From positions 124,001 to 188,000 of the IMG/VR virus record IMGVR_UViG_3300028840_001395: a stretch of 64,000 nucleotides of DNA. The stretch is one strand, 5' to 3'. The translations under genes were made by a program, and so were the position numbers. Position 1 is the stretch's first letter, and every line of letters starts with the position of its first letter. Positions 45,859 to 62,890 of the stretch are shown one piece after another. A model generated the notes under the pieces. That model saw only the letters and a program-made list of their open reading frames with translations, was not told the DNA's origin and made no database searches.

Positions 45859-46538
45859 CGCTTCTCCTGTGCAAGCTCCCATGCCTGCTCTGCGAGCTTC
45901 CGGGCGTCCTCGACCGGCGCTCCCTGCATATAGATACCTGCCTCACCCCGGAGACAGGCGGATTCGTGATGGCTCTGCGCCCAAGCGGCCAGGAAGCTGA
46001 TCACGAACTCCTCCACGAACCGAGCCTTGGACAGAGACTTGCCCTCCATCCACGGGGAGAGCATCCCTGACAAGACTACTCTAGGAAGGGCGTTCAATAA
46101 GCCCTCTACCGTCTGGGTGATTCGCATGGACACCTCGATGAACGTCCTGTTCACGGCGTCCAGGAGGGCCGTGAGCGCCTGATCGACCGTCTTGCGGCCC
46201 TCACACCCCACCGGGAACATCGGTTGCCCCAGAGGCATATCGATCCCCGCTCCCCAGCCGTTCGCCCGCTCGTCGCCCGTGATGGGGCAGAGGTCTGGCT
46301 CCTCATACCAGACGTGGATGACGGCGACCTTGCCCCCGTGGGGGTCGCCCTGGTCGGGCCAGCCGTGGAAGCTCTGGCAGCGAGGCTCTCCGGGGCCGGG
46401 GCCGGTCACACCGGAGTATTTCCACTTCATCGCCATCGGGGTCAGCTTCTGGAGCTTCTCGATGGTTTTCAGGGCGAAGTGGGCGTCCGCCTCGGCCTGG
46501 GCATCTTCCTCGGTTCCAGGGTAGTTTACGGGCATCAT
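45855..46538 (-). CDS. Hypothetical protein
   Basis: GGAGGAG RBS, coupled. Confidence 0.6.
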   Translation of the reverse strand: MMPVNYPGTEEDAQAEADAHFALKTIEKLQKLTPMAMKWKYSGVTGPGPGEPRCQSFHGWPDQGDPHGGKVAVIHVWYEEPDLCPITGDERANGWGAGIDMPLGQPMFPVGCEGRKTVDQALTALLDAVNRTFIEVSMRITQTVEGLLNALPRVVLSGMLSPWMEGKSLSKARFVEEFVISFLAAWAQSHHESACLRGEAGIYMQGAPVEDARKLAEQAWELAQEKR

Positions 46539-47971
46539 CTCCTCCCACTGCCGGGAATACGATGTCTAGGGCACGGAGAAGGATTCTCGGGGTTCTCGCC
46601 TGCTTGGCATTTCCAAGACCATACCCCGCTCTTGGACTTGGACGAAATCCCGTAGTCACACGCCGGACACTGGACACTCTTGCGGGTGCTGCCCTCTGCG
46701 GGCTTGTCCTCGTAGAAGTCACAGTCCTCGTACCCGGTCATGTTCACGTTGATATGGCAGTCACCGTCATCCTTGAGGTGCTTGCACGTCGTACACTTCG
46801 GCCACACTTTCGTTGGTGTCTTCTGCGAGTACAGGTTGCAGATCGGAGCCGTTCCCAACGCCTCGTCCACCTTGCAGGTGCCGGGGCCTCCGTAGTTCTC
46901 ACAGTTCTTGCAGTTGCGCTCCGAGGGACGGGTGGCCCGAAGTCCTGTCCCGCCCGTGGGGGCGATCCCGGCCCACTTGAAGTCCGCGCAACTGACGGGG
47001 TTGCCGATCACCCAGTTCAACCGACATCCGGGGACTTGGGCGTCGAAGTGGACGCACTGGGGGCAACTGGGCTTCGGGCCGGGGCTAGCCTTCTCGGCCT
47101 TGGTCTTGAAGTCTTCACAGTCCCGCGACGGGTAGTGGCCCCGCTGGCACTGCCAGTCCCAGTCGCCGTCCGACGCCTCAACACGGGTGCCATGCTGGCA
47201 GCGGCCACAAGGCACGTTGCGTGTCTCGCCCGTGGCCTGGAGGGGTTTCCAGTCGTTCGCCAGGGTCGGCTGCTTCGCCGCCGCCTTCGGCGGCGGCTTG
47301 GGCAAGTCAGTGGGATGGTCTGGCTGCTGGGCCTTGGGGACGTTGTGGAGGTGGTAGCAGCTACGGGTCTTGTTGGGGTCGCGCTTCTCCTTGCTGCCGC
47401 AGTTGATGAACTCCGCTGCACAGCCCCGACACGGGTCCGCATAGTCGTAGCACCGGACGACATAGCCCTTGGCCAACCACTCGCGGAGCTTGTCCGGCGT
47501 CACGTCGGCGGTCCCACTCTCGTCGGAGAACCGGATGGTGGCGTAGTCCTTGTCCACCGCGAAGAGGCTGCCCGCCCGGATCTCGCACGAGTACACCCCC
47601 CACGAATGGTTGAACGTCTTGACCACCATGTAGCTGTGAGGCAGCGGGAAAATGGCTCGGACAGAGGACAGCCATCCGATGAAATCGTCCTTGAGCGGCT
47701 TGATGACCACCCGCTCAGCCTCTTCCACCGTCCGGGCGAACGGATCCAGTCGGGTCACGATCTGACAGACGGCCCACTCGTTCTGATTCAGGATGATCTC
47801 CAGGCGGAGGGAGCGGTCGAAGTCCGCCTGGAGGATCCAGTGGATACCGTCCGGTGTCTGCCGGACTTCCCAAGCATGGGCGGAAATCTCGGGGAAGATT
47901 TCCCGCGCCAGCCGGACGATGCCGGTGATCGTCATGCCCTGCTGGGCCGCAGCCTGGGGAAGTGCGCTCAC
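46535..47971 (-). CDS. DFxGW-family paralogue with six short C-terminal Cys clusters
   Basis: EIFPE...DDFIGWLSS; repeated CxxC.H/N...C...C. Confidence 0.7.
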   Translation of the reverse strand: MSALPQAAAQQGMTITGIVRLAREIFPEISAHAWEVRQTPDGIHWILQADFDRSLRLEIILNQNEWAVCQIVTRLDPFARTVEEAERVVIKPLKDDFIGWLSSVRAIFPLPHSYMVVKTFNHSWGVYSCEIRAGSLFAVDKDYATIRFSDESGTADVTPDKLREWLAKGYVVRCYDYADPCRGCAAEFINCGSKEKRDPNKTRSCYHLHNVPKAQQPDHPTDLPKPPPKAAAKQPTLANDWKPLQATGETRNVPCGRCQHGTRVEASDGDWDWQCQRGHYPSRDCEDFKTKAEKASPGPKPSCPQCVHFDAQVPGCRLNWVIGNPVSCADFKWAGIAPTGGTGLRATRPSERNCKNCENYGGPGTCKVDEALGTAPICNLYSQKTPTKVWPKCTTCKHLKDDGDCHINVNMTGYEDCDFYEDKPAEGSTRKSVQCPACDYGISSKSKSGVWSWKCQAGENPENPSPCPRHRIPGSGRR

Positions 47972-48414
47972 CCTTCGCCCACCGTGTAGGCGTCACATTC
48001 ACCCGTCCCGCAACAGCCAAGGCACGAGGTTCCGCACACGGGGCATGACCCCTCCCCGTAGCACACGGGGCACGGGTCGCCTTCCTTGAGCGGGCCATCC
48101 GTGAACCAGAAGTCTCGGAGGTCGAGTCGCCACTTGCACCCGAGCTTCTCATCGGCCCGGTTGGCGAAGCAGTCGTAGCACCACACCCCAGCGTCGGAGC
48201 CGATGACCTCATCCCAGAGCTTCGGAGGCACCAGGAAGTCGTGGACGTTGCGGCCACAGTCCCGGCAGCGAGCACACTCCTCGATCAAGGGATACGTCTT
48301 GAGCGTGTGCCGGTTGACCCACTGGGTCAGGTTCCACAGGTGGATACGCCCGATCTTGAGCAGGTAGCCCACCATGTTCCGCCACCCGGTCATCTCTTCG
48401 CGGAGGTCAGTCAT
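47968..48414 (-). CDS. Cys-rich hypothetical protein
   Basis: CRDCG...WCYDCF; CPVC..EG.CPVC. Confidence 0.55.
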   Translation of the reverse strand: MTDLREEMTGWRNMVGYLLKIGRIHLWNLTQWVNRHTLKTYPLIEECARCRDCGRNVHDFLVPPKLWDEVIGSDAGVWCYDCFANRADEKLGCKWRLDLRDFWFTDGPLKEGDPCPVCYGEGSCPVCGTSCLGCCGTGECDAYTVGEG

Positions 48415-49042
48415 TGGGGAATCCACAGGCCGGGCACTTGTCCTGCCAGCTTGCGTTGTAACAGACCTCGCAGTTGGAGCACACGCGGGAGTGCTCGTGG
48501 CTGGCGTGCTCCGGGCAGAACTCGACAATCCGGCCTTCCTTCCAGGTGCAGGCGACACAGGCACAGGCGGAGCAGAACACACCGCCCTGCTCGCCGGGCT
48601 TGGCCCCGCAGATGTGGCAGGGCTTGTCCTCATCGCCCAGCGATTCGAGAAAGCGCATGACCTCCCGGTATCGGGGAGTCTCCTCGCCCCGCCACTTGGG
48701 GAAGTCTCGCAAGGCCCACTGAAGCTGTCGGATGGCCTCGGCCCGGCTCCGGGATAGCTCCAGCATCGCCCGTGGGAGCACGTCGGAGGGCTTGATGGTC
48801 GCCCCTGCCAGGCTGACATCCCGAAGCTCGTGAAGGTGGTCTTGGACGGCCAGACAGAGCCGTAGCACGGTGGTCTTGTACTCGTCGTAGGTGATCATGC
48901 CCATGTTGGCCAGTTCCCAGGCCAAAGCGTGAGCCGTCTCGTGCGGCGAAGAACACCGCTTCTCCAGCCACTTCCGGTCGCCCTCGTTGATGAGGGCGGC
49001 GAGCTTCTCGCGGAGCATCTCATCGGTCAGGGACAGGTTCAT
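48407..49042 (-). CDS. Helical hypothetical protein with C-terminal Cys clusters
   Basis: ATGA overlap, start MNLSLTDE. Confidence 0.6.
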   Translation of the reverse strand: MNLSLTDEMLREKLAALINEGDRKWLEKRCSSPHETAHALAWELANMGMITYDEYKTTVLRLCLAVQDHLHELRDVSLAGATIKPSDVLPRAMLELSRSRAEAIRQLQWALRDFPKWRGEETPRYREVMRFLESLGDEDKPCHICGAKPGEQGGVFCSACACVACTWKEGRIVEFCPEHASHEHSRVCSNCEVCYNASWQDKCPACGFPND

Positions 49043-49434
49043 TCGGGCACCCCCGGCCTCTTGGCCTTCCAGTCCCCGACTACTTCGTAGGGCTGGTCGA
49101 AGTAGCGGAAGCCCTGGAAGCCCTTCATCTTGATGGGCTTGACCCACTTCCACGAGTCGGCTCGCATCATCAGCCGGGCACCTTCGCCCCAGTCCCGGTT
49201 GGTGACCTCGCAGGTGTTCTGCTCGCCCCAGTCGATGCCCAGCAGGGTGCAGAAGCCCCGGACGTAGCCGTCCTCGACGTAGAACACCTTGTCGCCGGGT
49301 CGTAGTTCCTGGGGAACACGCTTCATCCGCCGGAAGTAGAGCACTCCCGGCCCGCCGCCCTGGGCCTTGGCCCACTCGGCTTCGGCCTCGGCGTTGACCC
49401 GCTCCGACTTGGGAGTCGTGACCACGATGTCCAT
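49039..49434 (-). CDS. ASCH/PUA-like domain protein
   Basis: PGDKVFYVEDGYVRGF...PIKMKGFQGFRY. Confidence 0.6.
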   Translation of the reverse strand: MDIVVTTPKSERVNAEAEAEWAKAQGGGPGVLYFRRMKRVPQELRPGDKVFYVEDGYVRGFCTLLGIDWGEQNTCEVTNRDWGEGARLMMRADSWKWVKPIKMKGFQGFRYFDQPYEVVGDWKAKRPGVPE

Positions 49435-49766
49435 CAGTCCCCCTCCTTGGTCACGAGCCGGAGCCGCCTCGACCGGGCGACTTCCTCCTCGAATCGGCGC
49501 TTGTCCTCCTCGTTGCAGAGGAGCATCACCTCATAGGCCAGCTTCATATCGAGCGGGAATCGCAAGTGAATGCAGATCTGGCCTCCGCCTTGGAACTCGT
49601 TCCGCACCTGGATGGACGCACAGCGCACGTTCTCGTAGCGGTCGGGGTCTCCGTTCACCCAGAGGCGCTCGATCTGGTTGAGGAAATGGCCCAGACGACC
49701 CTCACGGGGGTTGTCAAGCTCCTTGAGCGTCACGTCGAAGCTGAGGCCCTTCTCCAGATCGCCCAC
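49434..49766 (-). CDS. Hypothetical protein
   Basis: GGAGGT RBS after a class I promoter. Confidence 0.6.
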   Translation of the reverse strand: MGDLEKGLSFDVTLKELDNPREGRLGHFLNQIERLWVNGDPDRYENVRCASIQVRNEFQGGGQICIHLRFPLDMKLAYEVMLLCNEEDKRRFEEEVARSRRLRLVTKEGD

Positions 49767-49781
49767 AGGGGCACCTCCTAC

Positions 49782-49813
49782 AGAGACTACTCCGCCGGAG
49801 TGCCGGGTAAGCC
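49782..49813 (-). promoter_or_regulatory. Class I bipartite phage promoter motif
   Basis: GGCTTAC-N14-GAGTAGTCTCT. Confidence 0.72.
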
Positions 49814-49815
49814 CC

Positions 49816-50223
49816 CTAGTCGTGCCAGCGCTTGACCTCGAAGCCCTGGAGGTCGCCCAGCAAGAGCTTCTCGCCGCAGTCGGGACAGGGCTTGCCGACC
49901 TTCACGTCGTCGGTGCAGGTCTTGGCCTCCTGGCAGGTGTTGCACCAGACATCGAAGTTGGCCGTGATGAAGCCCCACCCCACCGAGTCCGTCCCGAACA
50001 GCCCGTTGAGCAGCCCCAGAATCCCGACCTTGAAGTTGCCGGGCGTGGGCTTCCCCGTCTGCTCATTGTAGGCCGATACCTGGATGGTCGGGTGGTCGGC
50101 CAACGCTTCGTTGCAAGGCACGCGGGCCTCGACCAGCGCCCGCATCGCAGCGGGATCGAGCTTGACGGCCTCGTTGAGCAGCTTCACGACATCTTCGGGG
50201 GTTACAGAGGTGATATCGGGCAT
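49816..50223 (-). CDS. Phage-type hypothetical protein with C-terminal zinc ribbon
   Basis: LLNEAVKLDP...RVPCN..LADHPTIQV...VGILGLLNGLFG; CxxC...CxxC. Confidence 0.65.
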   Translation of the reverse strand: MPDITSVTPEDVVKLLNEAVKLDPAAMRALVEARVPCNEALADHPTIQVSAYNEQTGKPTPGNFKVGILGLLNGLFGTDSVGWGFITANFDVWCNTCQEAKTCTDDVKVGKPCPDCGEKLLLGDLQGFEVKRWHD

Positions 50224-50236
50224 CCGGGCCTCCCTT

Positions 50237-50713
50237 CTAGTCGCAGTGGATGCAGAGGTTGTAGCGGTCGATGGTCTGCCCCTCGTCATCGGTCAGGAAC
50301 AGCCGGGTGTTGCACAGGACAGACGTGGACGGCCCCATGTCCGGGTCATCCCCCCGCAGCCAGAACTCGATGAGGTAGGCGTGGGTGTCCTCCACGGGGA
50401 TGTCCCGGAGACGGGGATGCTTGGCCCGTTCCTGATCCCGAGAACGGACGTGCTTCAGGTGTCGCCGGGCCTCGTCGTGGCTGAACTCGGACTGGCTGAA
50501 GTTGACCTGTCGGGAGGGGTAGATGATGGCCCCCTGCAACTCTACAGGCTCGCCCTTGTCATCAACGTGACCCTCGGGATAGAGCAGGATGGGGCCACCA
50601 TCCTTCCCCATCGCACCCGGTTCGGCCACGACACACCGGAGAACCCGGCACCGCCGGATGTCCTCGATGTAGGCCCAGCCCTCATCACCAACGGTCTGCA
50701 TCTTGAGAATCAT
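50237..50713 (-). CDS. Hypothetical protein
   Basis: GAGGAGG RBS; C-terminal FLTDDEGQTIDR. Confidence 0.6.
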   Translation of the reverse strand: MILKMQTVGDEGWAYIEDIRRCRVLRCVVAEPGAMGKDGGPILLYPEGHVDDKGEPVELQGAIIYPSRQVNFSQSEFSHDEARRHLKHVRSRDQERAKHPRLRDIPVEDTHAYLIEFWLRGDDPDMGPSTSVLCNTRLFLTDDEGQTIDRYNLCIHCD

Positions 50714-50767
50714 GACGTACCTCCTTCTGACTACTGACTACGCACTACTATTAGCCAGATTATACCG

Positions 50768-52204
50768 TCAGAAGGGGATGTCATCGACCTTCTCCTGGTG
50801 GAGAAGACAGTCGTCGGTCGAGGTCGTGTCACTACCCTGGACACAGGTTGTGGCTCCTGAGCCTGGATCAGTGCGCTTGTATTTACACCCCCGGCACAGG
50901 GACTCGCTCCGTTTCTTGGGCGGCGGGGGCGGCGGCTCTTCCAGTGTCCAGTCCTCACACTTCGGGTCATCGGCATACCGCTCGGGACGGGTGCAGCCAT
51001 TGTTGTAGTGCCAGCATCCTTCGCAGCCCGTGATCCCATGCTCGAAGAACGGCACCATCGCCCCGCTGGCGACCAGCTCGCGCACCTGATCGTCAGAATC
51101 ATCCCCCATCATGTGGATGATATGGCCCTTCCCCCAACGATTCTCGCCAATCTCGACCGTCTGGGTGGTCAGGAACTTGTAGCCCTTGACCTCGACGGGG
51201 TGGGGAACCATGCCAGCAACGACCGAGAGCCAACCCACGAAGTCATCCCAGGAATGACTGCCGAAGACGACCCTCGACTTCTCCCGATAGACCGGGTGGC
51301 TACCCCCGTCTGTTTCCTCTCGGGTCAGAATCCCAACGGTATCATCCACGCCGATCACGAACTCGACGTACCAATCTTGACCGAGAGAAGCGAAGATATC
51401 GGCCTTCGGAATTCCTTTCATCGGAGAGGTGATGTTCCAGTCGTGACCTGGCACCCACGGAAAGACCTCCTTGATGGTCGGCAGGATGTTCAGGGCGATG
51501 GCCAACGGAGGGCCTTCCAGGTCGGGTGTCTCGGGCGGCGGCTCCTCGGGAGGCATTGGGACCAGCCAGCCCCGCAGGTGGTCAGGATCGGCGCTAAGAT
51601 GATTTCCCGACCCCTTGTGTCGGATGAGATCACCCTTGACTTCGACCTCATCATCCTTGGCAAAGCCCACGTCGTTCACGAAGAACGGCACCGTCACCAC
51701 ACAGGGAACCCACTGGCCTCCGTTCTCGACCTTGACAAGCAAGCCTTCCCCGATGGCCTTGGAAAGCTCATCGGCGGCTACCGTCCACAGCAGATGAGGG
51801 TCTGTCCGTATCCCCCTCGCCGCCCCGTTCCGCAGGTTGATCTCCACGATCTGACCCTCGGTCAAATCGAACTTCGGGACAAGCTCGAAGTCACCCGTGA
51901 CTACGAACGAAGAAATCTCTTCGACGGGGACGGGCGGCTTGGCGACCTTCATCGGCTTCATCCGGGTGTCGAGGACTTCCGAGAGATGCTTGTCTGCGGG
52001 GAGCCACTTGCCCCCGGTAGCCCGGCAGCGGAACTTGCTAGCACCCGCTCCCGAGAACAAGACCTCGATGGTCTCCCCGATCTTGACGTGCTGCTGGCCG
52101 TCCTCCGTCTGTAGGATGAAGTTCCGGGTGACATCGTAGTCCCTGACCTCGGGGGTCACGTTCCCGGTGGAGGCGAAGCCGTGGGGCATGTCTTGGCTGG
52201 CCAC
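50768..52204 (-). CDS. DFxGW-family paralogue with N-terminal beta-barrel-like repeats and C-terminal Cys clusters
   Basis: KEVFPWV...WDDFVGWLSVV; CEGCWHY, CRGCKY. Confidence 0.7.
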   Translation of the reverse strand: MASQDMPHGFASTGNVTPEVRDYDVTRNFILQTEDGQQHVKIGETIEVLFSGAGASKFRCRATGGKWLPADKHLSEVLDTRMKPMKVAKPPVPVEEISSFVVTGDFELVPKFDLTEGQIVEINLRNGAARGIRTDPHLLWTVAADELSKAIGEGLLVKVENGGQWVPCVVTVPFFVNDVGFAKDDEVEVKGDLIRHKGSGNHLSADPDHLRGWLVPMPPEEPPPETPDLEGPPLAIALNILPTIKEVFPWVPGHDWNITSPMKGIPKADIFASLGQDWYVEFVIGVDDTVGILTREETDGGSHPVYREKSRVVFGSHSWDDFVGWLSVVAGMVPHPVEVKGYKFLTTQTVEIGENRWGKGHIIHMMGDDSDDQVRELVASGAMVPFFEHGITGCEGCWHYNNGCTRPERYADDPKCEDWTLEEPPPPPPKKRSESLCRGCKYKRTDPGSGATTCVQGSDTTSTDDCLLHQEKVDDIPF

Positions 52205-52207
52205 GGA

Positions 52208-52330
52208 TTAGCCCCCATACGCCTTGATCAGATAGTCCGCCAGGAACCCAGCACCGATCAGAATCCACGTCGCCGCGAGGAACCACCAGCAGGCCTTGAG
52301 CACGTCCTCGGGGATGTTCGGGACTCTCAC
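52208..52330 (-). CDS. 40-aa single-TM peptide (absent from ORF track)
   Basis: WWFLAATWILIGAGFLADYLI; GTGA overlap. Confidence 0.5.
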   Translation of the reverse strand: MRVPNIPEDVLKACWWFLAATWILIGAGFLADYLIKAYGG

Positions 52331-52920
52331 TTGCCCATCCCCATCACCACGCGGGGCTCGGGCAGGTCATCCCTCACGAACTCACAGCGACCATAGGTTG
52401 CCTCCGAGATCACGAAGGTCTGCTTCCCTGTTCGGATGACCGGGATGCCAAACAGCATATCTGGCTGGGAGTCAGGGGCATACTCGTGGCCCAGCGCCTC
52501 CTGAACCTTGTGTCTCATCAAGTGCCAGGAGAACTTGCCTCCCAGGTAGATCGTCCCCGGAGGGATGTCGGCCCTCTCCAGGGCGAGAACGGCCTCTCTG
52601 ACACGCATCAGGGCGTCCCAGGTGCATTCCCGGAGAGCCTGCTTGCGGTCTCGACGCTTCTGGGCCGTCCCATCCTCCTCGTAGCTCTGCTGGATGAAGG
52701 GCTCGATCTCGTCCCTGAACTCCCCGTCGTAGGCGAAGGCGGTGGTGATGTCGTCACGGGTCAGGTGGGGATAGACTTCGTGGACGGCCTGGAACCAGTC
52801 CGCCTGGGTTCCCACGTCGCGGGTGATTCTGGCGATGCGCCAGATGTAGCAGCCCTTGATGTGAGCGATACCCTTGGCGTCCTTCTGAACCTCGGGAAAC
52901 AGGTCTTCCTGGTCGCTCAT
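52327..52920 (-). CDS. DUF433-like N-terminal domain protein
   Basis: VYPHLTRDDITTAFAY; GGAGG RBS. Confidence 0.55.
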   Translation of the reverse strand: MSDQEDLFPEVQKDAKGIAHIKGCYIWRIARITRDVGTQADWFQAVHEVYPHLTRDDITTAFAYDGEFRDEIEPFIQQSYEEDGTAQKRRDRKQALRECTWDALMRVREAVLALERADIPPGTIYLGGKFSWHLMRHKVQEALGHEYAPDSQPDMLFGIPVIRTGKQTFVISEATYGRCEFVRDDLPEPRVVMGMGK

Positions 52921-53462
52921 CTCTTCCTCCCGTGGCCCAGGATTCCGTGGAGTTCGTCTCGCAGGGACTCCGCTTCCTTGATGATCTCGATGGCCTTGTC
53001 CACGCACTCGGCGTGGGTCGGGCTGCCGGGCAGCGGGACGGCCTCGGCCAACCCCTGCAGCAGGTTCTCGTAGTGATGGAGAGTGGCCCGAAGCTCTCGC
53101 TCCGACTGGGACTTCCCTGCCGGGGTCTCGCTCTGGTCGGCACCGAGGAGCGCGATGATGTTGTCAGCGGCCTCCTTCAGGTCGGAGTGGTCGAGATAGC
53201 CCTCGGGAGTCCGCTTCTCGACCAACTTCATCTCACCCGGCCCCAACGTGTCGCCCGGATCCTCGCTGTCGAGCCACTCGATCAGGGCCTCGACGCACTC
53301 CTCCGAGTGCGGGGCCTCGTTGCCCTGGGGACAGTCGTGAAAGAGCGGGCAGCCCGTGAAATGAACCGGACAACCTCCGAACCGGCCCGCAATCGAGGAC
53401 TCCCAGGTGAGCCGACACGTCTCCACCACGTTGCGAACCAGGATGCTGTCACGGCGGCTCAT
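52917..53462 (-). CDS. Hypothetical protein
   Basis: GGAGGT RBS after a class I variant; CP.H..GCP...DCP. Confidence 0.6.
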   Translation of the reverse strand: MSRRDSILVRNVVETCRLTWESSIAGRFGGCPVHFTGCPLFHDCPQGNEAPHSEECVEALIEWLDSEDPGDTLGPGEMKLVEKRTPEGYLDHSDLKEAADNIIALLGADQSETPAGKSQSERELRATLHHYENLLQGLAEAVPLPGSPTHAECVDKAIEIIKEAESLRDELHGILGHGRKR

Positions 53463-53479
53463 CCAGCACCTCCTCTGGG

Positions 53480-53511
53480 CTATACTACTCCGACCAGGGG
53501 GTGCGTAGCCC
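53480..53511 (-). promoter_or_regulatory. Class I motif variant
   Basis: GGGCTAC-N14-GAGTAGTATAG. Confidence 0.6.
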
Positions 53512-53546
53512 CCCCACTTCGGGGTATGATGCACGGGGAGGATACG

Positions 53547-53849
53547 ATGGCCAAGAAAGTCGTCAACTGTCCCTACTGCGAGAAGCCCGGCGTCCTGAAA
53601 ACCCGCGAGTCCACCTTCCGCCGGGAGGACAAGTTCGTCACCATCCAGGTCAAGCACTACGAGTGCCCTTCGGGCTGCGAGATGCCCCGAGGCCAGGGTG
53701 ACCCACCCCTGCCGGAGAAGTACCGGGTGTTCGGCTGGGAGGATATGGAGTTGATGAAAGAGAACTCGGAGCAGGCCAAGCTCGCCTGGCTGGCCAAGTA
53801 CGGCGAGGAGATGCCCAAGCCCCGTAGGATTCGGCGTAAGCAGCCGTGA
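53547..53849 (+). CDS. YgiT/MqsA-type zinc-finger protein
   Basis: CPYC...TF......VTIQVKHYECP..C; GGAGG RBS. Confidence 0.6.
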   Translation: MAKKVVNCPYCEKPGVLKTRESTFRREDKFVTIQVKHYECPSGCEMPRGQGDPPLPEKYRVFGWEDMELMKENSEQAKLAWLAKYGEEMPKPRRIRRKQP

Positions 53850-53935
53850 AGGTCATCGCGTTCATCGGGATGACCTTGGTGATGCTCAGCATCCTCTGGT
53901 TCGGGCTCAATGGAGAAGACGATGGAGAGGAATGA
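53846..53935 (+). CDS. 29-aa single-TM peptide (absent from ORF track)
   Basis: MKVIAFIGMTLVMLSILWFGL + acidic tail; GTGA overlap. Confidence 0.4.
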   Translation: MKVIAFIGMTLVMLSILWFGLNGEDDGEE

Positions 53936-54693: not shown

Positions 54694-54867
54694 ATGCCCG
54701 TATATGAATACGAATGCCCCAAGTGCAAGCACCGCTTCGAGCGCCTCGTCAAGATCAGCGACCCGCTGCCCGAGTGTCCCGAGTGCGGTCACAAGCCCGT
54801 CGAGAAGGCTGTGAGCGTATCGACGTTCAAGCTGAAGGGTGGGGGCTGGGCCGAGGACGGGTACTAG
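54694..54867 (+). CDS. FmdB-family zinc-ribbon protein (57 aa, absent from ORF track)
   Basis: MPVYEYECPKCKHRFE...PECPECG...FKLKGGGW. Confidence 0.85.
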   Translation: MPVYEYECPKCKHRFERLVKISDPLPECPECGHKPVEKAVSVSTFKLKGGGWAEDGY

Positions 54868-55190
54868 CCGTAGGGCTTGTGCTCGACCACGATGGTCACG
54901 ACCTCGGTGCCGTCGTTCCGGCGCTTCGGGCGTCCTCTGACCTCGGTGACGAACTGATCACGCTTGAGTTCGGACGAGATCGCACGAACCTTGTCCTTGG
55001 GGATGTTGTAGAAGACGTAGCTCTCCTTGCGCCCCGAGAACTCGACCACGAAGTCCAGATCCCAGTCGTAGTCGAAGCCCCTCGGAAGATGCTTCCTGAC
55101 GACCTTGACCGCATCACGACCCGTTGGCCCACGCTCATCGAGATGCAGCCGCGCCTGGCGCTGAACGAACGTCCAGTCCTTGAGGTCCAT
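54864..55190 (-). CDS. Hypothetical protein with N-terminal LKDWTFV peptide
   Basis: 3' part of track ORF 54864..55892; N-terminus matches 44049. Confidence 0.6.
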   Translation of the reverse strand: MDLKDWTFVQRQARLHLDERGPTGRDAVKVVRKHLPRGFDYDWDLDFVVEFSGRKESYVFYNIPKDKVRAISSELKRDQFVTEVRGRPKRRNDGTEVVTIVVEHKPYG

Positions 55191-55195
55191 CGTTG

Positions 55196-56032
55196 CTACC
55201 CTGGCCTGTAGATGTTGTGCTTCCGCGCCCAGTCGAGAAGCTCCCGGTCGAAGTCGTGGAACTCCCGGCGGTGATTCATGAACCGGATGTGAGCCATCTC
55301 GTGAATCATCGTCCGCATCACGGCAGAGTACTTCCGCAGCTTCATCGGGTTCTTCTTCTGTCGGACGTTCAGGGCGATGACGCCCCCGCCGCCCCGGTTG
55401 AAGCCCAGCGACCCCTCGGCCACGGACTCCTTCATCTTCTTCCAGCGGAGGCCGAACTCCTTTGCAAGAGGCTTCACGTCGCGCTCGATGCGCCCCATGA
55501 TGGCCGCGACCTCTTCCTTGCCCTCGACATCGTAGACCGAGTAGCCGTTGATCACGGTCCGGGTCCAGTCCTTGCGCTGCTCGACCCGCTGCTTCTTGCC
55601 TTCCAGATGCTTCTTGCCCCACCTGACCCACTTGGGCAGATACTTCTGCTTGACGTAGTTGTCGGCGTCCATCCCCCACAGAATCAGGAGCTTGTTGCCC
55701 TTGATCTTGGCCTTGGAGCGGCGGTTGTCGGTGTTGACCTGGGTGACCTTGATGCCGTCGATCACCGAGTCCTCGTAGGGGCCGATGGCCTTGGCGGTCT
55801 TTCCTCGGGCCTTGATGCAGGCCTTGCAGTTGGCCTTCGCCCGACCGTCGTTCGACAGGATAGTCCAGTTCTCGTCCACACCCTTCCCGCACAGCGTCTT
55901 GTCCTCGTTCTCGGCCCAGTGGATTGGCCCGTAGGGCTTGCCGCTCTTTGAGCGGACACGCTGAACCGTGTAGAGGGGATACTTGCCCTTGGCACCCAGC
56001 CAGCGGGCGGCGATGCGTTCGGCGGTGTTCAT
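55196..56032 (-). CDS. WLM/SprT-like zincin metallopeptidase with N-terminal RIAARW peptide
   Basis: SLGFN...IALNVR...MRTMIHEMAHIRFMNHRREF. Confidence 0.75.
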   Translation of the reverse strand: MNTAERIAARWLGAKGKYPLYTVQRVRSKSGKPYGPIHWAENEDKTLCGKGVDENWTILSNDGRAKANCKACIKARGKTAKAIGPYEDSVIDGIKVTQVNTDNRRSKAKIKGNKLLILWGMDADNYVKQKYLPKWVRWGKKHLEGKKQRVEQRKDWTRTVINGYSVYDVEGKEEVAAIMGRIERDVKPLAKEFGLRWKKMKESVAEGSLGFNRGGGGVIALNVRQKKNPMKLRKYSAVMRTMIHEMAHIRFMNHRREFHDFDRELLDWARKHNIYRPG

Positions 56033-56457
56033 GTGATCAACATGTCGAAGCCGTCCCTCTGGACAAGGGCGGTGATTCGCTCCAGGGTGACGTTGATGAC
56101 TCCCTGCATGGAGCCTCTCCCGCTCCAAGTGGCGGTGCCCGTCACCTCGGCCTTGATGCTTCGTCCATCGGCCCACATGATGACCTTGCCGTAGTCGGCC
56201 TTCGCCCGGCCACCAGCCTTGCTGATGCCAGTCTTCAGCTCGGTGGTGACCTTCTGCGCGACCTTCCGCAAGAGGGCGTCCCGCTTGACGATCTCTTCGA
56301 GGACAGTCGTGCCACCCATGCTGGAAGTGACGATGATGTCGGCGCTTTTGTCCCGGGTACGGACTTCGACCAGCCCGTAGAGGCCCACAGCGGTCTTGGT
56401 GACGTAGCGGGAGGCGACTCGGCGGCGCATGGAACGGTCGGACTTCATCTGGGCCAT
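56029..56457 (-). CDS. Hypothetical protein with N-terminal RVASRY...KTA peptide
   Basis: GGAGG RBS after a class II motif. Confidence 0.65.
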   Translation of the reverse strand: MAQMKSDRSMRRRVASRYVTKTAVGLYGLVEVRTRDKSADIIVTSSMGGTTVLEEIVKRDALLRKVAQKVTTELKTGISKAGGRAKADYGKVIMWADGRSIKAEVTGTATWSGRGSMQGVINVTLERITALVQRDGFDMLIT

Positions 56458-56471
56458 GAGAATCCTCCACA

Positions 56472-56497
56472 GGTTCTACGGAGGGAGTCTCATAGAG
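56472..56497 (-). promoter_or_regulatory. Class II motif copy (CTCTAT-N12-GTAGAACC)
   Basis: Identical spacing and 3' box to the copy at 62067. Confidence 0.55.
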
Positions 56498-56500
56498 GAT

Positions 56501-56944
56501 CTACCGAGTTGGGAACCCCATTCCCCAGCCACCTTCGGGCAGAGCGCAGATCCCGACCCCTTGCAGAGCACCCATCAGGTCGTCAAACCGCTCTCGCAGA
56601 TAGGCTTCCTGCTCGGGATGGAGCTTGGCCGCATGAGGATCGTCCCCGGTCAGCATGAAGCGGAAGAACTTGAGCGACCGAAGTGCCGCCTTCATCTCTT
56701 CATCACCCTCGATGGGTTCGCCGGTCAGGTGGATTTCGAGCAAGAGGGCTTGCTTGTCGTCGTAGTTGGATCGGGCGCACTTGTCGCAGGCAGCGACGGC
56801 GGGATCTTCGGGCAAGATGCCGAAGGACTCGCCGTTGGTGAAGGGGCGCTTGCAGAAAGCGCAATGGTCAGGGGCCATATCGTGACTGTAGTGGGTGTTG
56901 CTCATAGGATAGATGCCTCCTCCTCGGTACGCCAGGTGTGCCAC
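56501..56944 (-). CDS. Zinc-binding hypothetical protein
   Basis: CAFC...CDKC. Confidence 0.55.
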   Translation of the reverse strand: MAHLAYRGGGIYPMSNTHYSHDMAPDHCAFCKRPFTNGESFGILPEDPAVAACDKCARSNYDDKQALLLEIHLTGEPIEGDEEMKAALRSLKFFRFMLTGDDPHAAKLHPEQEAYLRERFDDLMGALQGVGICALPEGGWGMGFPTR

Positions 56945-57630
56945 TCGGCGGGGATGTTCTTGTCCATCAGGTCATCCCCGTCGTACTCCCGTTCCAACAC
57001 CCCGTCGTGGATGAGCAACTCCAGTTTCGGCCCACAGCCGTTCTCCCGGCCTGGGAACCACGTCCAACCCACCCGGAACCAGCAGTCCGGGTGCCTGTTG
57101 GGATGCGGGACGACCCTCGCTCCCATCCAGGGTGTACGTTCTATACCGAGTCCTCCTACGCTGGTGTAACTACTTTCCAGGTCGCAGAGCAGATGCGAGT
57201 TGAGAATGGCCACTAGACGGCCCTGGGGCAGCCAGAGAGGCCCTTCGTCGGTGTCGAGGTGGATATCACCCGCCGCCCGGTAGATGCCCGACAGACCGCT
57301 CTCTGGAGCACTGAAGCTCCGGTCGAAGATGGTCTGGGCCAGGGAGCACCAGCCGATGAAGTCCTGTTCAGTCAGGTTGACCCGTCCACAGAGGCTCCGC
57401 AGCAGGTAGCCGTTGATCGAAGCTCGGAGGATGACGTACTCGCCCGTTTCGTCCAAGACCATCGGGCCTTCCACCACGAGGTTGCGGGCGACGATCTTGG
57501 CTTCGAGATACCCTGACCGAGGTTTCTCGAAGTGCGGCTTGCGGCCATGCAGGACTTCACCGAAGGTCTCCCGCATCGTGCGGCAGAACAGGTCACGCAG
57601 CGGGTCGTCCAGTGGGATGGTGACGCTCAT
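56902..57630 (-). CDS. DFxGW-family paralogue
   Basis: RETFGE...QDFIGWCSLA. Confidence 0.65.
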   Translation of the reverse strand: MSVTIPLDDPLRDLFCRTMRETFGEVLHGRKPHFEKPRSGYLEAKIVARNLVVEGPMVLDETGEYVILRASINGYLLRSLCGRVNLTEQDFIGWCSLAQTIFDRSFSAPESGLSGIYRAAGDIHLDTDEGPLWLPQGRLVAILNSHLLCDLESSYTSVGGLGIERTPWMGARVVPHPNRHPDCWFRVGWTWFPGRENGCGPKLELLIHDGVLEREYDGDDLMDKNIPAEWHTWRTEEEASIL

Positions 57631-58229
57631 TCGCTGATGGGTCGGAGGCAGCCCAGTCGAATCATGCGGGGGATGTTGGAGATGCTGTCGCTCTTGCTCG
57701 GGGTAATCCACGGCCCCCGGTCACTCCCGAAGTGAAGCCGGATACGGCGACCGTGACCGTATCCGGCCACCTGAACCCGGTCACCCTTCTTGAACCGCAC
57801 CGATGTCTGGGAGGGCTCGTCGTAGATGCCGAAGGTCTTGACCACATGAAAGAGCTGCCCCTCGGTGGAGATCCGGTCATACTCGGTCTTGACCTTGTAA
57901 ATCCACCCCTGAAAATCCGACCAAGATGAGTTCCGGAGGGCCGAACGGTCAAGCTCCTCGACCCGCTGTGGGGAGGAATCCCGGCGATAGAAGATGGCCA
58001 CGGCGGCGTGGTCATTGATGGAGATCTTCACCTTGTACTGGTCATCCAGGTCGCCCCGGAGGATGAACATGCCGCTCTGCCCACCATCCTCCCACTTGAA
58101 GTCCCGAGCGCAGTCATCCCCGAACACAGAGCACACCAGGTCAGCCACCTTGGCCAAGAACGGCTCCATCGCCCCCGGATGGGGCTTGATGACCAGACCT
58201 GGATTCAACGCCAGGGGCACCATTGTCAC
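57627..58229 (-). CDS. DFxGW-family paralogue
   Basis: CSVFGD...WSDFQGWIY; HVVKTF module. Confidence 0.65.
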   Translation of the reverse strand: MTMVPLALNPGLVIKPHPGAMEPFLAKVADLVCSVFGDDCARDFKWEDGGQSGMFILRGDLDDQYKVKISINDHAAVAIFYRRDSSPQRVEELDRSALRNSSWSDFQGWIYKVKTEYDRISTEGQLFHVVKTFGIYDEPSQTSVRFKKGDRVQVAGYGHGRRIRLHFGSDRGPWITPSKSDSISNIPRMIRLGCLRPISE

Positions 58230-58245
58230 TTCGACACCTCCCAGA

Positions 58246-58277
58246 GTAGACTACTCTGTCGGAAGGGAAATTAAGCC
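58246..58277 (-). promoter_or_regulatory. Class I bipartite phage promoter motif
   Basis: GGCTTAA-N14-GAGTAGTCTAC. Confidence 0.72.
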
Positions 58278-59239
58278 CCTGCTACCAGGCTCTTGGATAG
58301 CGATACCCAGCCCACGAAGTCATCCCAGCGGGCGTTGTCGAGGGTCGTATCGTCCAGCATCGGTTCATCCTCGGCACCCCGCACCATGCACCGGGACGAG
58401 TTGGGCCTGATCTGGACGAGGATGTCCCGATCCCTCTTGACCCTGACCAGGACGCTCACGATGAGACTGCCACTCTCAAGATCCTGGGTTTCGTTCAAGA
58501 TCCAGAGCTTGTCCGGCACCTCGGGGAACACGTCACGGAGAAGCTCCATGACCTTGCGGATGAATGCCGTGGAGGCCCTGTAGCCGCCCGCATCAGGCGG
58601 GAGCTTGCGAAGGGCCACCTCGGGGCGAATGAACTGAGGCAGTGTGTCGTTGTGAGGGGTCATATCGCTCTCCTCCGAGGGCTTGCTGAAGCTGTCCTCG
58701 GGCATCGGATTGCTCTTGAGCACGGCCTCGGCAGCGGTCACCAGAGCCAACAACGCTCGATTATCCCGTCCTCCGCCCCCCTCCTGCAACCTCTCCTTGA
58801 CCTCGGTGAGTGCCTCCTCGGTCAGGGGCGGCGGGTCAGTTTCCGGCTTGGCGTCCCAGTCAACGGGCCGGGCAGCCTTGGGGTCACCTACGGGGTAGCC
58901 CTCCTCGGTGTCCGCCGGAGGTGGAGTGAGCATCTCCGAGTCCACCTTGCCTGCGAGAGCCTGTGCTGCCTCGGTGTAGGTGGTGTTGTAGAGTGAATCA
59001 CGGGTCGAACCCGTGGTGCTCATAGGCCCAGCGATCAGCCGACCATCACGGATGGCCTCCTCGGTTTCTGCATCAATGTCCGCCCGAACTTCCGGGGGGA
59101 GATCCCTGACCTTGACCGTGTGATTCGCAAGCTGATCATCCAGTTCCTTGAGGTCATCACGGAGCTTCTCCGTGTCCGGTTCCGTGACTACGGTTCCCGT
59201 TCCCTTGACCAGCTTGTGCAGCCATTCACGCAGGCTCAT
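58271..59239 (-). CDS. DFxGW-family paralogue (domain at C-terminus)
   Basis: RDVFPEV...WDDFVGWVSL. Confidence 0.7.
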   Translation of the reverse strand: MSLREWLHKLVKGTGTVVTEPDTEKLRDDLKELDDQLANHTVKVRDLPPEVRADIDAETEEAIRDGRLIAGPMSTTGSTRDSLYNTTYTEAAQALAGKVDSEMLTPPPADTEEGYPVGDPKAARPVDWDAKPETDPPPLTEEALTEVKERLQEGGGGRDNRALLALVTAAEAVLKSNPMPEDSFSKPSEESDMTPHNDTLPQFIRPEVALRKLPPDAGGYRASTAFIRKVMELLRDVFPEVPDKLWILNETQDLESGSLIVSVLVRVKRDRDILVQIRPNSSRCMVRGAEDEPMLDDTTLDNARWDDFVGWVSLSKSLVAGA

Positions 59240-59261
59240 GGCCCTTCTACCCCACTCGGCG

Positions 59262-59293
59262 GCATCACGGCCCCCTCTTCGGGGGTAGAATAC
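59262..59293 (+). promoter_or_regulatory. Divergent class I-like motif
   Basis: GCATCAC-N14-GGGTAGAATAC upstream of 59299. Confidence 0.3.
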
Positions 59294-59298
59294 CCCCG

Positions 59299-59904
59299 AT
59301 GGATAGGCTGAAGGAACACCGTGACCTCGCTCTCAAGCTCCTCGTGGCCCGCAGCTTGCCCTCGGGCTTGCCCTGGTCGGTGGACGAGGACACCAAGTAT
59401 ATCGCCCGTGAGCGGGTCTTGTGGGCCGCTCTGTCGGACACCGAGAAGGAGCAGGAGCAGAAGTGGTTGCAGGAGTTCTGGGCCGAAGAGAAGCCCCGGA
59501 TGTACTGCCCCGACCCCTGCTGGGGTGACTGGGCCTCGAAGATCGAGGTGATCGAGATTCTGGACGAGGCGTTCGGAAGCCCCTCTGACGCCTTCAGGCC
59601 CTATCAGAAAGGGCCTCTCGGCCCCGACGTGGCCCCGAACCACCACAAGCTCTGTGACTGGCTCTGGACACGCGGATTCCATGCTGTCAGCGCCTCTGAC
59701 CCCCTCACCCTCATCATCCCTCCACACCGGGTCAATCAGGAAGCCGACCGGCTCCTGGCGCTCCTGGCTCGCAACTTCCCGAAGCTCGACATCCGCCCCT
59801 TCGGTGACAGGGGTGGCCCCGTCCAGTTGCGCTCGACCTATGATCCCGTCATGGGAACAGCCTTCATCGAGCTACACGGGCTAGATGATTCGGACTTCAA
59901 CTAA
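59299..59904 (+). CDS. Hypothetical protein
   Basis: Only long GC3-biased frame in this gap. Confidence 0.65.
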   Translation: MDRLKEHRDLALKLLVARSLPSGLPWSVDEDTKYIARERVLWAALSDTEKEQEQKWLQEFWAEEKPRMYCPDPCWGDWASKIEVIEILDEAFGSPSDAFRPYQKGPLGPDVAPNHHKLCDWLWTRGFHAVSASDPLTLIIPPHRVNQEADRLLALLARNFPKLDIRPFGDRGGPVQLRSTYDPVMGTAFIELHGLDDSDFN

Positions 59905-59928
59905 CCAACTACCTAGATTTTTCGGGGT

Positions 59929-61050
59929 CTAATTGGTTGGGGCTTGTGGCAACCCGTCCCGATTTTTCGGGCGATAATTCGTCAGGTGGATAGAGTGAAA
60001 TGCGTCGTTGTTCGCATTGGAGAAGATGACGGTGCCGTCCTCCACAAGGTCATTGGCGGTCAGCTCGATACCCCGGAACGTGACCCTTCCTTGAGCGGGC
60101 CTGAATGAGTCCGATACGTGCTCGGTGCGTTCTTTCAACAGGGCATGGAGCATCAGAGGGTTCATCTGGATGCGGCTCGGCCACCCGTTCGTCTTGGTGA
60201 CTACGGCGCTGACCCCCTCGTAGATGGCTTCCGAGATCGGTGTCCGGGTGCCCAGCGGGGGGTCGCCCCAACCCAGCGGACTCGCTGCAGGGGGGACGTG
60301 GCCGTGCCCCCGCAGAATCTCGACCGCCTTGTCCTCCATCTCCGCGACAGCCTTCTCCACGATGGAGGTGAGCAGTCCTGCCTTGTCGCTACGCTTGCCC
60401 GTGGGGTCGGGGAGGAGCCGGACGTAGGCATAGGGGTGCATCGCCCGCCAAGGCCGGGGGAACGTCACAGACCAGCGAGTCGTCGGGGCGACCTCGTAGG
60501 TGGCCTTGCTCAATGAGATCTGGTTGAACGGCGGGATTCCGACTGGAGCCATTCTCCAGCAGAGGGCCTGGAGGTTGGGCATCTTGTAGCGGGAGTGGGT
60601 GTCAAGAAGCAGGTCGTAGGTCAACTCGGGCAGCCAGTCCTTGACCCAGGACACCCAGCCGATGACCTCGCTCATGTCCTTCGCCAGGTGCTCATCTCGG
60701 ATACGCCAGTCGCTCTCATGGGAGCCGTCCGCCCAAGCGATCTCCTTGAGTGACAGGTAGATCTTCTTGTCGCTGTTGAGCCCCCAGAGGTGTTGGATGT
60801 CGAGGCGGAAGTCCTGGGTGTCCGCACTGTCCAGTTCTCCGGCCCTGATACGAACCGTGATGGGGGTCATGTCCTGATCTTCAGCGTCTCTGCGCTGGAA
60901 TCCGACTTCGACTGGGCTTTCAAGGAAGGTATCGAGGAGCAGTTCCACGACACCTCGGAGGTCGAGGCCGTTGCACCGTTCCCGCAAGGCGCAGTGGCTC
61001 ATCTTGTCGAGGGCGCTCCGAAGCGTGACGTTCGCGTCGGCCAAGGTCAC
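59929..61050 (-). CDS. DFxGW-family paralogue (divergent)
   Basis: LDTFLE...SEVIGWVSWVK. Confidence 0.65.
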   Translation of the reverse strand: MTLADANVTLRSALDKMSHCALRERCNGLDLRGVVELLLDTFLESPVEVGFQRRDAEDQDMTPITVRIRAGELDSADTQDFRLDIQHLWGLNSDKKIYLSLKEIAWADGSHESDWRIRDEHLAKDMSEVIGWVSWVKDWLPELTYDLLLDTHSRYKMPNLQALCWRMAPVGIPPFNQISLSKATYEVAPTTRWSVTFPRPWRAMHPYAYVRLLPDPTGKRSDKAGLLTSIVEKAVAEMEDKAVEILRGHGHVPPAASPLGWGDPPLGTRTPISEAIYEGVSAVVTKTNGWPSRIQMNPLMLHALLKERTEHVSDSFRPAQGRVTFRGIELTANDLVEDGTVIFSNANNDAFHSIHLTNYRPKNRDGLPQAPTN

Positions 61051-62048
61051 CTCTTGATGGCCACCGGAAGTAGCCGAGCACCTTGTTCCGTATGGTGCTT
61101 CATCACGTAGATCTGGCCCAAGTCCTTCCTCTCACCCCACTCTACCCAGAACGCTGCACCCAGCGTGTCCAGATCGTCACCGAGCTTCTTCGCCCACTTC
61201 TCGGGCGTGTCCACCTTCTTCGCGGGCTGGGCCACGGCCAGAATCCGGGTCGTGGTCAGGCGCGATAGCTCGGGAAGCCGGTCTTGCACCTTCTTGGTCA
61301 GGATGGGGTCATCGAGGACGACCAGGTGGGGCTTGTCGAGGCCCTTGATCCAGGTCACCAGGCTGTCGAACACGTCATGCGACTTGCCCTCGGTGTCGAA
61401 ACTGTGGACGGACAGCACCTTGTCGCTGTCGCGCCACTGGGGGAACCGTCTGGCGAAGCTGTTGAGGAACTCCACTGGCTCTTGCTCGTTGGTCAGGACG
61501 TGAACCGGCCCCTCGTCCAGCGCCGCGTAGGCGATGTGCAGGGCCACCGAGGACTTTCCGCCGCCCGGAGGCCCGGCGATGATGGCTGACCCGACCCAGA
61601 ACAAGTCGGACATCTCGATGAGGTGCTGCGCCCGCCCACTGGGCCGGACGTAGGCAGGCTTGCTGTCCGCCCCGTGCTTCACGGACAAGGGCGGCAGCGG
61701 GAAGTCGATGCCACAGGCGTCGAGCATCCGGCCAGCCTCCATGATGATCTCGCGGTAGACGCGCTCCATGAGCCAGGACTCGAACTTCTCCCAGTCCGGG
61801 TCGCCTGGCAGTTGGAAGGTCGAGATGGGGGTGGACTCGCACTGCTGGGAGAAGAACACGTCGATGATGTGGCCGTTGACCTCCTCCTCCAGCACGGGGG
61901 CGACTTCGATGTAGTAGCGGTTGGCTATCATGCCCTGATACACGTCACCGTCCGGCTCGTCAGGATCCCACTCCAGCTTGACGAACGGGAATACGTCCGC
62001 GATCAGAGCGGCCACGCGCTTCATCGTCTTGAGCAGTGATTCGTCCAT
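61047..62048 (-). CDS. DFxGW-family domain fused to a RecA/KaiC-like P-loop NTPase
   Basis: ADVFPFV...WEKFESWL; Walker A GPPGGGKS; Walker B LVVLDD. Confidence 0.75.
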   Translation of the reverse strand: MDESLLKTMKRVAALIADVFPFVKLEWDPDEPDGDVYQGMIANRYYIEVAPVLEEEVNGHIIDVFFSQQCESTPISTFQLPGDPDWEKFESWLMERVYREIIMEAGRMLDACGIDFPLPPLSVKHGADSKPAYVRPSGRAQHLIEMSDLFWVGSAIIAGPPGGGKSSVALHIAYAALDEGPVHVLTNEQEPVEFLNSFARRFPQWRDSDKVLSVHSFDTEGKSHDVFDSLVTWIKGLDKPHLVVLDDPILTKKVQDRLPELSRLTTTRILAVAQPAKKVDTPEKWAKKLGDDLDTLGAAFWVEWGERKDLGQIYVMKHHTEQGARLLPVAIKR

Positions 62049-62066
62049 GATCTTCCTCGACGTAGT

Positions 62067-62092
62067 GGTTCTACAAGGCCATCCCTATAGGG
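62067..62092 (-). promoter_or_regulatory. Class II motif copy (CCCTAT-N12-GTAGAACC)
   Basis: Matches the copy at 56472. Confidence 0.55.
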
Positions 62093-62095
62093 CAA

Positions 62096-62890
62096 TCAAG
62101 GGGCAATCGCCCTGGGACTCACCTTGACCGGATCCTCACTGAGCCGAAGATGGTCAAAGATCGCCTTGATGTAGAGCCGCTTGAGCAACTTCTGGGCTCG
62201 CTCGATGAAGGTGTCGTCCGACCCCCGGAACGTGATCTCGCCCTTCCGAGACAAGGTGTCCGTCCCGACCATAATCCTGTAGGCCCACTGGAAAGGCTGT
62301 TCACCCATGAAGCGGTTGTGAATCCGGCCCACGACGTTACCTTCGACGGCTCCGTTGACCTTGAACAGCATCGAGACGGGCTTGGTCGTGTCGTCGGTGT
62401 GGTTGAACATCCACTTGACGGTCATGTCGTCAGCCACGTAGCGGATGATCTCCTGCGGGGCCTTCCCGCACTGGCGGAGGACTTCCAACGCCCCTCGAAT
62501 CATGGCGTCGTTGTGGTGTCCCTGGTAGCCGTCCGGGAACAGGTCTGCCGGATCCATCATGCCGATCAACGTCTGCTGGGCCAGTTGGGCGATGCTCTCC
62601 CAGATGTAGGACAGCCAACCGATGAGGTCGGCCTCGGTACGGGGCCTGTACGCGTCGAGACGCTTCGCAGCCTCGACGTTCCAGCGCCAGCGACCACCCG
62701 CCTTCCACTCGACGCGGGCGACGTGGCTGGTCAGGTCGGTGTGCAGCAGGATGAAGTGCTTGCCGACGCGGAACGCCTCCGCGCCCTCCTTGTATTGATT
62801 CTTGTCGAACAGGGCGGTGCCGTCGTCTTTCTCGGCTCCAGGGAAGATGCTCCGGATGATACGACCACCCTCGTCCATTCGGATGGTCAT
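62096..62890 (-). CDS. DFxGW-family paralogue
   Basis: RSIFPG...ADLIGWLSY; ATGA overlap. Confidence 0.65.
   Translation of the reverse strand: MTIRMDEGGRIIRSIFPGAEKDDGTALFDKNQYKEGAEAFRVGKHFILLHTDLTSHVARVEWKAGGRWRWNVEAAKRLDAYRPRTEADLIGWLSYIWESIAQLAQQTLIGMMDPADLFPDGYQGHHNDAMIRGALEVLRQCGKAPQEIIRYVADDMTVKWMFNHTDDTTKPVSMLFKVNGAVEGNVVGRIHNRFMGEQPFQWAYRIMVGTDTLSRKGEITFRGSDDTFIERAQKLLKRLYIKAIFDHLRLSEDPVKVSPRAIAP

Follow-up and report, generated by a model that had tools for sequence, protein, structure and literature searches.

The closest described fold class to the protein domain treated here, which is about 100 residues long and recurs in eight proteins (p1-p8) of an uncultivated huge phage, is that of the alpha-beta sandwiches: frataxin/CyaY, the FP-domain (Fbxo7/PI31) and the C-terminal domain of Mediator Med17, all without sequence similarity to it. 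The eight proteins are encoded in bases 124001-188000 of the 435,804-bp virus record IMGVR_UViG_3300028840_001395 (IMG/VR); this whole stretch of 64,000 nucleotides is called the window throughout, and positions are those of the window unless the genome is named. We find that the domain of p1-p8 is a real, previously unannotated family of a known, common fold class, with five certain members, while p6, p7 and p8 are probably members as well. The modelled domain has the arrangement of frataxin and CyaY, in which a helix, five to seven antiparallel strands and a second helix follow one another and both helices lie on one face. Sequence membership of the corresponding Pfam family (Frataxin_Cyay) is nevertheless not indicated, given that the domain has no Pfam match and no PDB sequence match at E<=10. 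Its signature, F-P at the end of helix 1 and W-x-D-F-x-G-W-x-S at the start of helix 2, was likewise not found by sequence search in the Pfam or PDB entries of frataxin, FP-domain and Med17.

Two further systems come close in shape. The Rhs-toxin immunity protein TriTu (PDB 7zhm chain D) is one of them; it has no sequence link to our family, and membership of the domain among such immunity proteins is not indicated. Class I type III secretion chaperones (e.g. AvrPphF ORF1, SycN/YscB, SicP) possess an extra helix between strands, which the model of p4 lacks, and a sequence link is absent here too. In contrast to the setting of TriTu and of these chaperones, the array lies in a phage genome and no toxin or secretion genes were seen among its annotated neighbours. 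The members, their partner modules and the one gene transcribed against them are as follows (aa, amino acids).

46535..47971, minus strand: p1, 478 aa; family domain at aa 13-111 (47639-47935)
47438-47638, minus strand: SH3-like barrel segment of p1, aa 112-178 (barrel hidden Markov model, HMM, E 1e-21)
46571-47431, minus strand: six CxxC-x(6-16)-C-x(9-13)-C units of p1, aa 181-467
50768..52204, minus strand: p2, 478 aa; family domain at aa 234-336 (51197-51505)
51506-52204, minus strand: N-terminal region of p2, aa 1-233, with three weakly barrel-like repeats (per-repeat E 0.05-0.66, suggestive)
51029-51196, minus strand: barrel segment of p2, aa 337-392
50807-51025, minus strand: two Cys4 units of p2, aa 394-466
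56902..57630, minus strand: p3, 242 aa; domain at 57316-57612, then an uncharacterised C-terminal region
57627..58229, minus strand: p4, 200 aa; domain at aa 20-120 (57870-58172)
57630-57869, minus strand: SH3-like five-strand barrel of p4, aa 121-200, in the AlphaFold2 model
58271..59239, minus strand: p5, 322 aa; domain at the C-terminus, aa 221-322 (58274-58579)
59299..59904, plus strand: opp, 201 aa; lone divergent gene inside the array, head-to-head with p5
59929..61050, minus strand: p6, 373 aa; probable divergent domain at aa 26-144 (60619-60975)
61047..62048, minus strand: p7, 333 aa; probable domain at aa 1-101 (61746-62048)
61221-61601, minus strand: RecA-superfamily P-loop core of p7, aa ~150-276
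62096..62890, minus strand: p8, 264 aa; probable domain at ~62582-62890, then an uncharacterised C-terminal region

An earlier note on this DNA had claimed an eight-member paralogue family from a recurrent motif, and the motif pair F-P ... D-F-x-G-W-x-S is indeed found in all eight minus-strand open reading frames (ORFs), 68-88 residues apart; the longer spacing in p6 is due to about 20 extra residues directly before the C-terminal helix. All eight are real genes: their G+C content at third codon positions (GC3) of 0.76-0.87 is the coding signature of this genome, which has a GC content of 62% and a GC3 of about 0.8 in true reading frames. The starts of two of them were corrected, to an ATG at 57630 for p3, in agreement with database entry P0002, and to an ATG at 62890 for p8. 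Pairwise identity between the paralogues is just 14-31%, and pairwise BLAST reveals a sole strong link, between p1 and p2 (BLASTP E 7e-7 across domain and barrel), within a weakly linked group of p1, p2, p4 and p5. A four-sequence HMM with default filters found its own training sequences only. Leave-one-out HMMs, searched against the whole 436-kb genome in six frames (4,688 ORFs), returned as top non-training match p1 (E 2e-9), p5 (1.5e-7), p2 (1e-3) and p4 (2e-3); p3 was marginal (E 0.38), p7 not significant (E 6.2), and p6 and p8 were not recovered. Among 1.84 billion representative proteins the profile of p1-p5 has 29 matches at E<=1e-3, ten of them at E<=1e-10; one of the 29 is a low-complexity artefact, and p3 itself is among the other 28 clusters. 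A profile built from outside sequences finds p1, p2, p4 and p5 at E values from ~1e-17 to ~1e-23 (p1 9.5e-19, p2 2e-17, p5 9e-24), and the orthologue profile of p3 aligns in hhalign with the family profile from which p3 was left out at a probability of 96% (P 2e-9, 96 columns). The domain of the eight window proteins is without a Pfam match at E<=1, that of 27 outside members without a match in Pfam or PHROGs at E<=0.01, and PHROGs gave noise only against the window proteins at E<=1; in line with the earlier note, which recognised no named family in it, the domain is absent by sequence from Pfam-A, PHROGs and PDB.

The position of p6, p7 and p8 is less straightforward. Orthologues of the three were gathered from syntenic metagenomic contigs and by protein searches, and their N-terminal profiles were aligned to the family profile with hhalign. 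All three align in register: p6 at a probability of 74% (P 3e-5; ~104 columns with a permissive setting), p7 at 62% (P 8e-5) and p8, from an extended orthologue profile, at 80% (P 1.5e-5, 89-98 columns). Control profiles of five neighbouring gene families reach probabilities of 0.1-2.7% (P 0.017-0.51). When all 525 scored proteins of the genome were ranked against the family profile, the top eight were exactly p1-p8, p6-p8 scoring 27.3, 26.2 and 24.3 at ranks 6-8, compared with 20.9 for the best unrelated protein; neither this ranking nor the search with the outside profile found a further member in the genome. It might still be argued that the family has only five members here and that p6, p7 and p8 resemble them by a coincidence of short motifs, namely an amphipathic helix with F-P at its end and a G-W helix. 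The leave-one-out HMMs, which miss p6 and p8 and give p7 merely E 6.2, speak for such a coincidence, as do the default local hhalign matches of p6 and p7, which span just 21-28 columns, and the circumstance that the ORFs had been picked by the same motif that the profile scores. We nevertheless consider this improbable in view of the genome-wide ranks, the separation of the orthologue profiles from the controls and the length of the p8 alignment. Moreover, p7 modelled independently has the same element order, p6-p8 are contiguous with p3-p5 on the same strand, and the motif is kept in distant p8 homologues (L040 and L039 retain a D-I-x-G-W-V helix, and the family HMM matches the L040 protein at E 0.002). 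Of the proposed eight-member family, p1-p5 therefore stand as significant members, and p6-p8 as probable, divergent ones.

The structural pattern of helix, strands and helix, which had been read from the letters, is reproduced by AlphaFold2. The model of p4, computed with a 32-row family alignment, has a predicted local distance difference test (pLDDT) of 88.4 and a predicted template modelling score (pTM) of 0.76, and consists of a helix at residues 19-36, five antiparallel strands within 44-99 and a helix at 103-122, followed by a five-strand small barrel with strands at 125-165. The model of p7, which is based on its own seven orthologues only and is of moderate confidence, has a helix at residues 3-19, four strands within 37-81 and a helix at 86-111, and then a RecA-type core; it is poor past residue 276. 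The shared domain is a five-stranded antiparallel sheet preceded by one helix and followed by another, and the two helices lie on the same side of it. VIA-align found matches for each domain of p4. A Foldseek search with the domain against PDB, AlphaFold DB clusters and BFVD gave nothing significant, and the two-domain model blurred the search; a feature search of ESM-Atlas with p4, opp and p6 gave only leads under chance level. A cluster of 118-aa stand-alone, mostly viral proteins in ESM-Atlas matches the domain at a template modelling score (TM) of 0.75, with a root mean square deviation of 2.4 A over 110 residues. F, G and W make up the invariant or almost invariant positions, and none of them looks catalytic. 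Most positions conserved across the paralogues carry aromatic or aliphatic residues (F, W, L, G), which suggests that they form the core of the domain and not a shared docking surface. The domain is acidic in seven of the eight paralogues (isoelectric point, pI, 4.2-6.1), and no conserved basic positions were found.

What is attached to this domain differs from protein to protein, as the earlier note had it. The partner modules are arrays of Cys4 units, SH3-like barrels, a RecA/DnaB-like domain and, in addition to those listed in the note, an acidic tail. Both in this genome and in related phage contigs the domain itself stands at the N-terminus, in the middle or at the C-terminus, and its partners are of at least six types. 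Among the outside family members there are also stand-alone forms and forms with an N-terminal CxxC...CxxC ribbon. No partner module of p1-p8 or of the outside members is a recognisable effector enzyme. For the proposal of the earlier note, by which the domain would deliver diverse effectors to one partner, these modules offer no support. An SH3-like small barrel, with five strands in about 60 residues, is present in p1, p2 and p4. The architecture of p1 is repeated in the homologues P0006, P0007, P0013 and P0014, and p2 has the homologues P0003 and P0021; that the N-terminal repeats of p2 are copies of the same barrel could not be shown. The Cys4 units of p1 and p2 have no Pfam match and are probably small zinc-binding modules. 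The N-terminal 220 aa of p5, a protein with the orthologues P0001, P0005 and P0008, are acidic (pI 4.5) and probably disordered. The RecA/DnaB/KaiC/FlaH superfamily enters the comparison through the partner module of p7 only, the P-loop core of which scores 23.5 bits against a Pfam cut-off of 27. This core is the only NTPase-like module of the set, and its Walker A lysine is kept in four of seven orthologues, with R at this position in two others and N in the last, so that the RecA-like domain may in some phages be a nucleotide-binding or an inactive scaffold.

Arrays of four to eight paralogues recur in related uncultivated phage contigs with a GC content of 41-62% (e.g. 41%, 57% and 61%). 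In close relatives (GC 60-61%) the order p8, p7, p6, opp (on the opposite strand), p5, p4, p3 is kept, and in three of these contigs a nucleoside deoxyribosyltransferase-like gene lies between p8 and p7. A contig with 57% GC carries four consecutive members and a p6 homologue, and a 116-kb contig with 41% GC carries four members; in L011 a p6 homologue adjoins opp. A search for loci related to p1 among viral contigs found none. Neither of the two nearest catalogued phages, LR745208.1 (485 kb) and Tunturi_5, yielded a match to the family profile, in a search for which the positive control on the genome of the window worked. The domain is lineage-restricted, as had been suspected, and limited to one clade of huge, uncultivated phages. 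In the window, four-nucleotide ATGA or GTGA overlaps are found between the upstream gene and p8 (ATGA), between p7 and p6, between p4 and p3 (ATGA) and at both ends of p1. The genes therefore form tightly coupled operon-like runs, which suggests co-expression in fixed proportions.

Several explanations can be given for a domain of this kind. The one that we favour, tentatively, is that it serves as a non-catalytic module for protein-protein docking or oligomerisation; that it binds protein at all, and what it binds, is something we infer. Multiplied into tandem, translationally coupled arrays in a clade of huge phages, the domain would tether variable binding modules into a multi-protein assembly made during infection, the modules being arrays of Cys4 units that probably bind zinc, SH3-like barrels, the acidic tail and a RecA-like domain that is possibly degenerate. 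On the one hand, docking could take place by domain-domain association between paralogues; on the other hand, a common phage or host hub could be bound via the open face or the edge of the sheet. The varied placement of the domain, terminal or internal, with at least six partner types, the recurrent arrays, the four-nucleotide overlaps, the stand-alone 118-aa Atlas proteins and the lack of catalytic-looking residues are all consistent with docking. Several points weigh against it. Core-like conservation is a poor fit to a common partner, unless this partner recognises the backbone or pairs with a strand. Between related phages p3-p6 share 48-66% identity, compared with 80-88% for opp, the WLM protease and p7, and such faster divergence is equally expected of arms-race binders. 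Finally, the membership of p6-p8 is probable and not proven.

The main alternative, which we regard as rather unlikely, is a diversifying inhibitor scaffold: the domain of each paralogue would bind a different host target, such as a defence or housekeeping protein, in the manner of immunity proteins or anti-CRISPR proteins. An arms race would then have produced the array, and the paralogues would have no common partner. Paralogue identities of 14-31%, with core positions conserved and the rest variable, are what such a scaffold should display, and the more rapid evolution of p3-p6 relative to their neighbours points in the same direction, as do the counter-defence-type genes in the window (ArdC, NAD synthase, NAPRTase, RIIA-like) and the immunity-protein-like shape of the domain. 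This shape, however, matches within the range of unrelated sandwiches, and no sequence link leads to an immunity or anti-defence family (Pfam and PHROGs were empty; PADLOC was not searched). Furthermore, the frequent fusion to other binding modules suggests that specificity resides in the partners and not in the domain.

A further reading, to which we assign a small probability, would make the domain a homotypic assembly handle, by which the paralogues co-assemble around a RecA-like p7 ring (as in DnaB, KaiC and FlaH) into a previously unknown, clade-specific multi-subunit machine. The zinc arrays, SH3-like barrels and acidic tail would then be its substrate-binding arms.

Quite improbable, too, is that the proteins are packaged in the virion. 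The domain would in that case act as a signal for capsid targeting or scaffold binding, by which diverse proteins enter the head to be ejected later. Clustered genes for head proteins that are packaged and injected are known from jumbo phages, and the likeness to the inner-body and head genes of phiKZ-like phages is an analogy drawn from a review (PMC13282480). Unlike these, our array does not lie beside recognisable structural genes: its surroundings are non-structural as far as they can be annotated (WLM protease, zinc-ribbon proteins, NAD and anti-restriction genes), and tail-fibre-like and replication genes are 70-120 kb away. A weak capsid-like signal resides in the C-terminal half of p6 (59929-60600, minus strand), where PF25209 (Phage_capsid_4) matches one of six orthologues over 118 residues at E 0.038 and 14.7 bits (cut-off 27), and the ESM-Atlas shape neighbours of p6 include capsid clusters at TM 0.21-0.25, albeit from a poor model (pLDDT 0.42). 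An HK97-type capsid fold is not indicated by this signal, which falls below every threshold and is absent from the copy in the window itself. A targeting signal that stands at the N-terminus, in the middle and at the C-terminus alike would also be unusual. Least of all do we expect the domain to bind nucleic acids as part of phage transcription or replication factors, after the example of the double-wing C-terminal domain in T4 MotA, since for all that zinc-ribbon-like Cys4 units, SH3/Tudor-like barrels and a RecA/DnaB-like core are common in nucleic-acid-associated proteins, the domain is acidic in nearly all paralogues, has no conserved basic positions and does not display the basic DNA-binding sheet surface of MotA.

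The divergent gene opp is far better kept than the family around it. In BLASTP and HMM comparisons its identity is 39-42% even across distant phage contigs with a GC content of 41-62%, and it is represented by 38 homologue clusters, on contigs of up to 536 kb. It has no match in Pfam or PHROG and is not a family member by the outside profile or by the ranking of the 525 proteins. In three more distant huge-phage contigs no array of the family can be recognised within 10 kb of opp, and p8-like proteins, which adjoin an AAA ATPase, are all that is found. The gene therefore looks like a core gene of a wider clade and not like a specific companion of the family. As a candidate for the common partner of the domain opp is weakened by the same distribution.

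The remaining genes of the window to be mentioned are given below.

62887..63603, minus strand: 238-aa gene preceding p8, with which it is translationally coupled; not a family member (hhalign control probability 0.1%)
8924-13527 and 18790-22594, minus strand: NAD synthase, NAPRTase-like, DFP (CoaBC-type) and RIIA-like, ArdC-plus-metallopeptidase genes, a metabolic and counter-defence block upstream of the arrays

The 238-aa gene is kept beside p8-like genes in distant huge phages (BLASTP identity 37% to L039 and 29% to L041). The order of 238-aa gene, p8-like gene and ATPase is retained there (L039 16260-18884, L040 14866-16787), the ATPase of these loci being a classical AAA protein (PF00004) of about 406 aa in place of the RecA-like p7. 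Annotated genes of the window include RIIA-like, ArdC with a metallopeptidase, NAD synthase, NAPRTase, a DFP flavoprotein and a WLM protease. A 46-aa ORF at 45099-45239 (minus strand), the start of which reads MKGYTLIELLITVAIVGIVA, has an N-terminal motif like that of type IV pilins or pseudopilins. Two other paralogue families were observed in the genome: one of ten members, which includes the window genes at 40827 and 42582, and one of six members of ~470-1340 aa outside the window (genome 255581-280774), at least one of which has tail-fibre-like PHROG matches.

The record has direct terminal repeats and is rated 100% complete; its first and last genes (genome 1-605 and 435189-435804) are alike, as a direct terminal repeat predicts. 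A simple gene caller based on GC3 yielded 532 genes, which cover 92.5% of the genome. Capsid and sheath Pfam models (including PF25209, PF17236 and PF05065) matched nothing in the genome, and the structural module was consequently not located. A 541-aa ORF (genome 307648-309273) that had been considered as terminase was rejected and is a helicase. A helicase elsewhere in the genome has 58% identity to an uncultivated 485-kb phage and 33% to Tunturiibacter phage Tunturi_5, the host of which belongs to the Acidobacteriota (PMC11924767). Among catalogued phages, Megablast found nothing that matches the region. DNA of the region is present in two sediment metagenomes and one seawater metagenome, and no RNA run contains it.

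Genes of huge phages are mostly unannotated, and the family described here is a recurrent, testable unit among them: a compact domain with a clear sequence signature, a confident model and a defined set of partners, found in tandem arrays across phage contigs of widely differing base composition. The domain could be registered as a new family, by which dozens of proteins would be annotated, and it is a small, soluble-looking target for binding studies. If it is a common docking handle, it would point to a new phage-encoded assembly; should it instead be a diversifying binder, new inhibitors of host proteins could be drawn from it.

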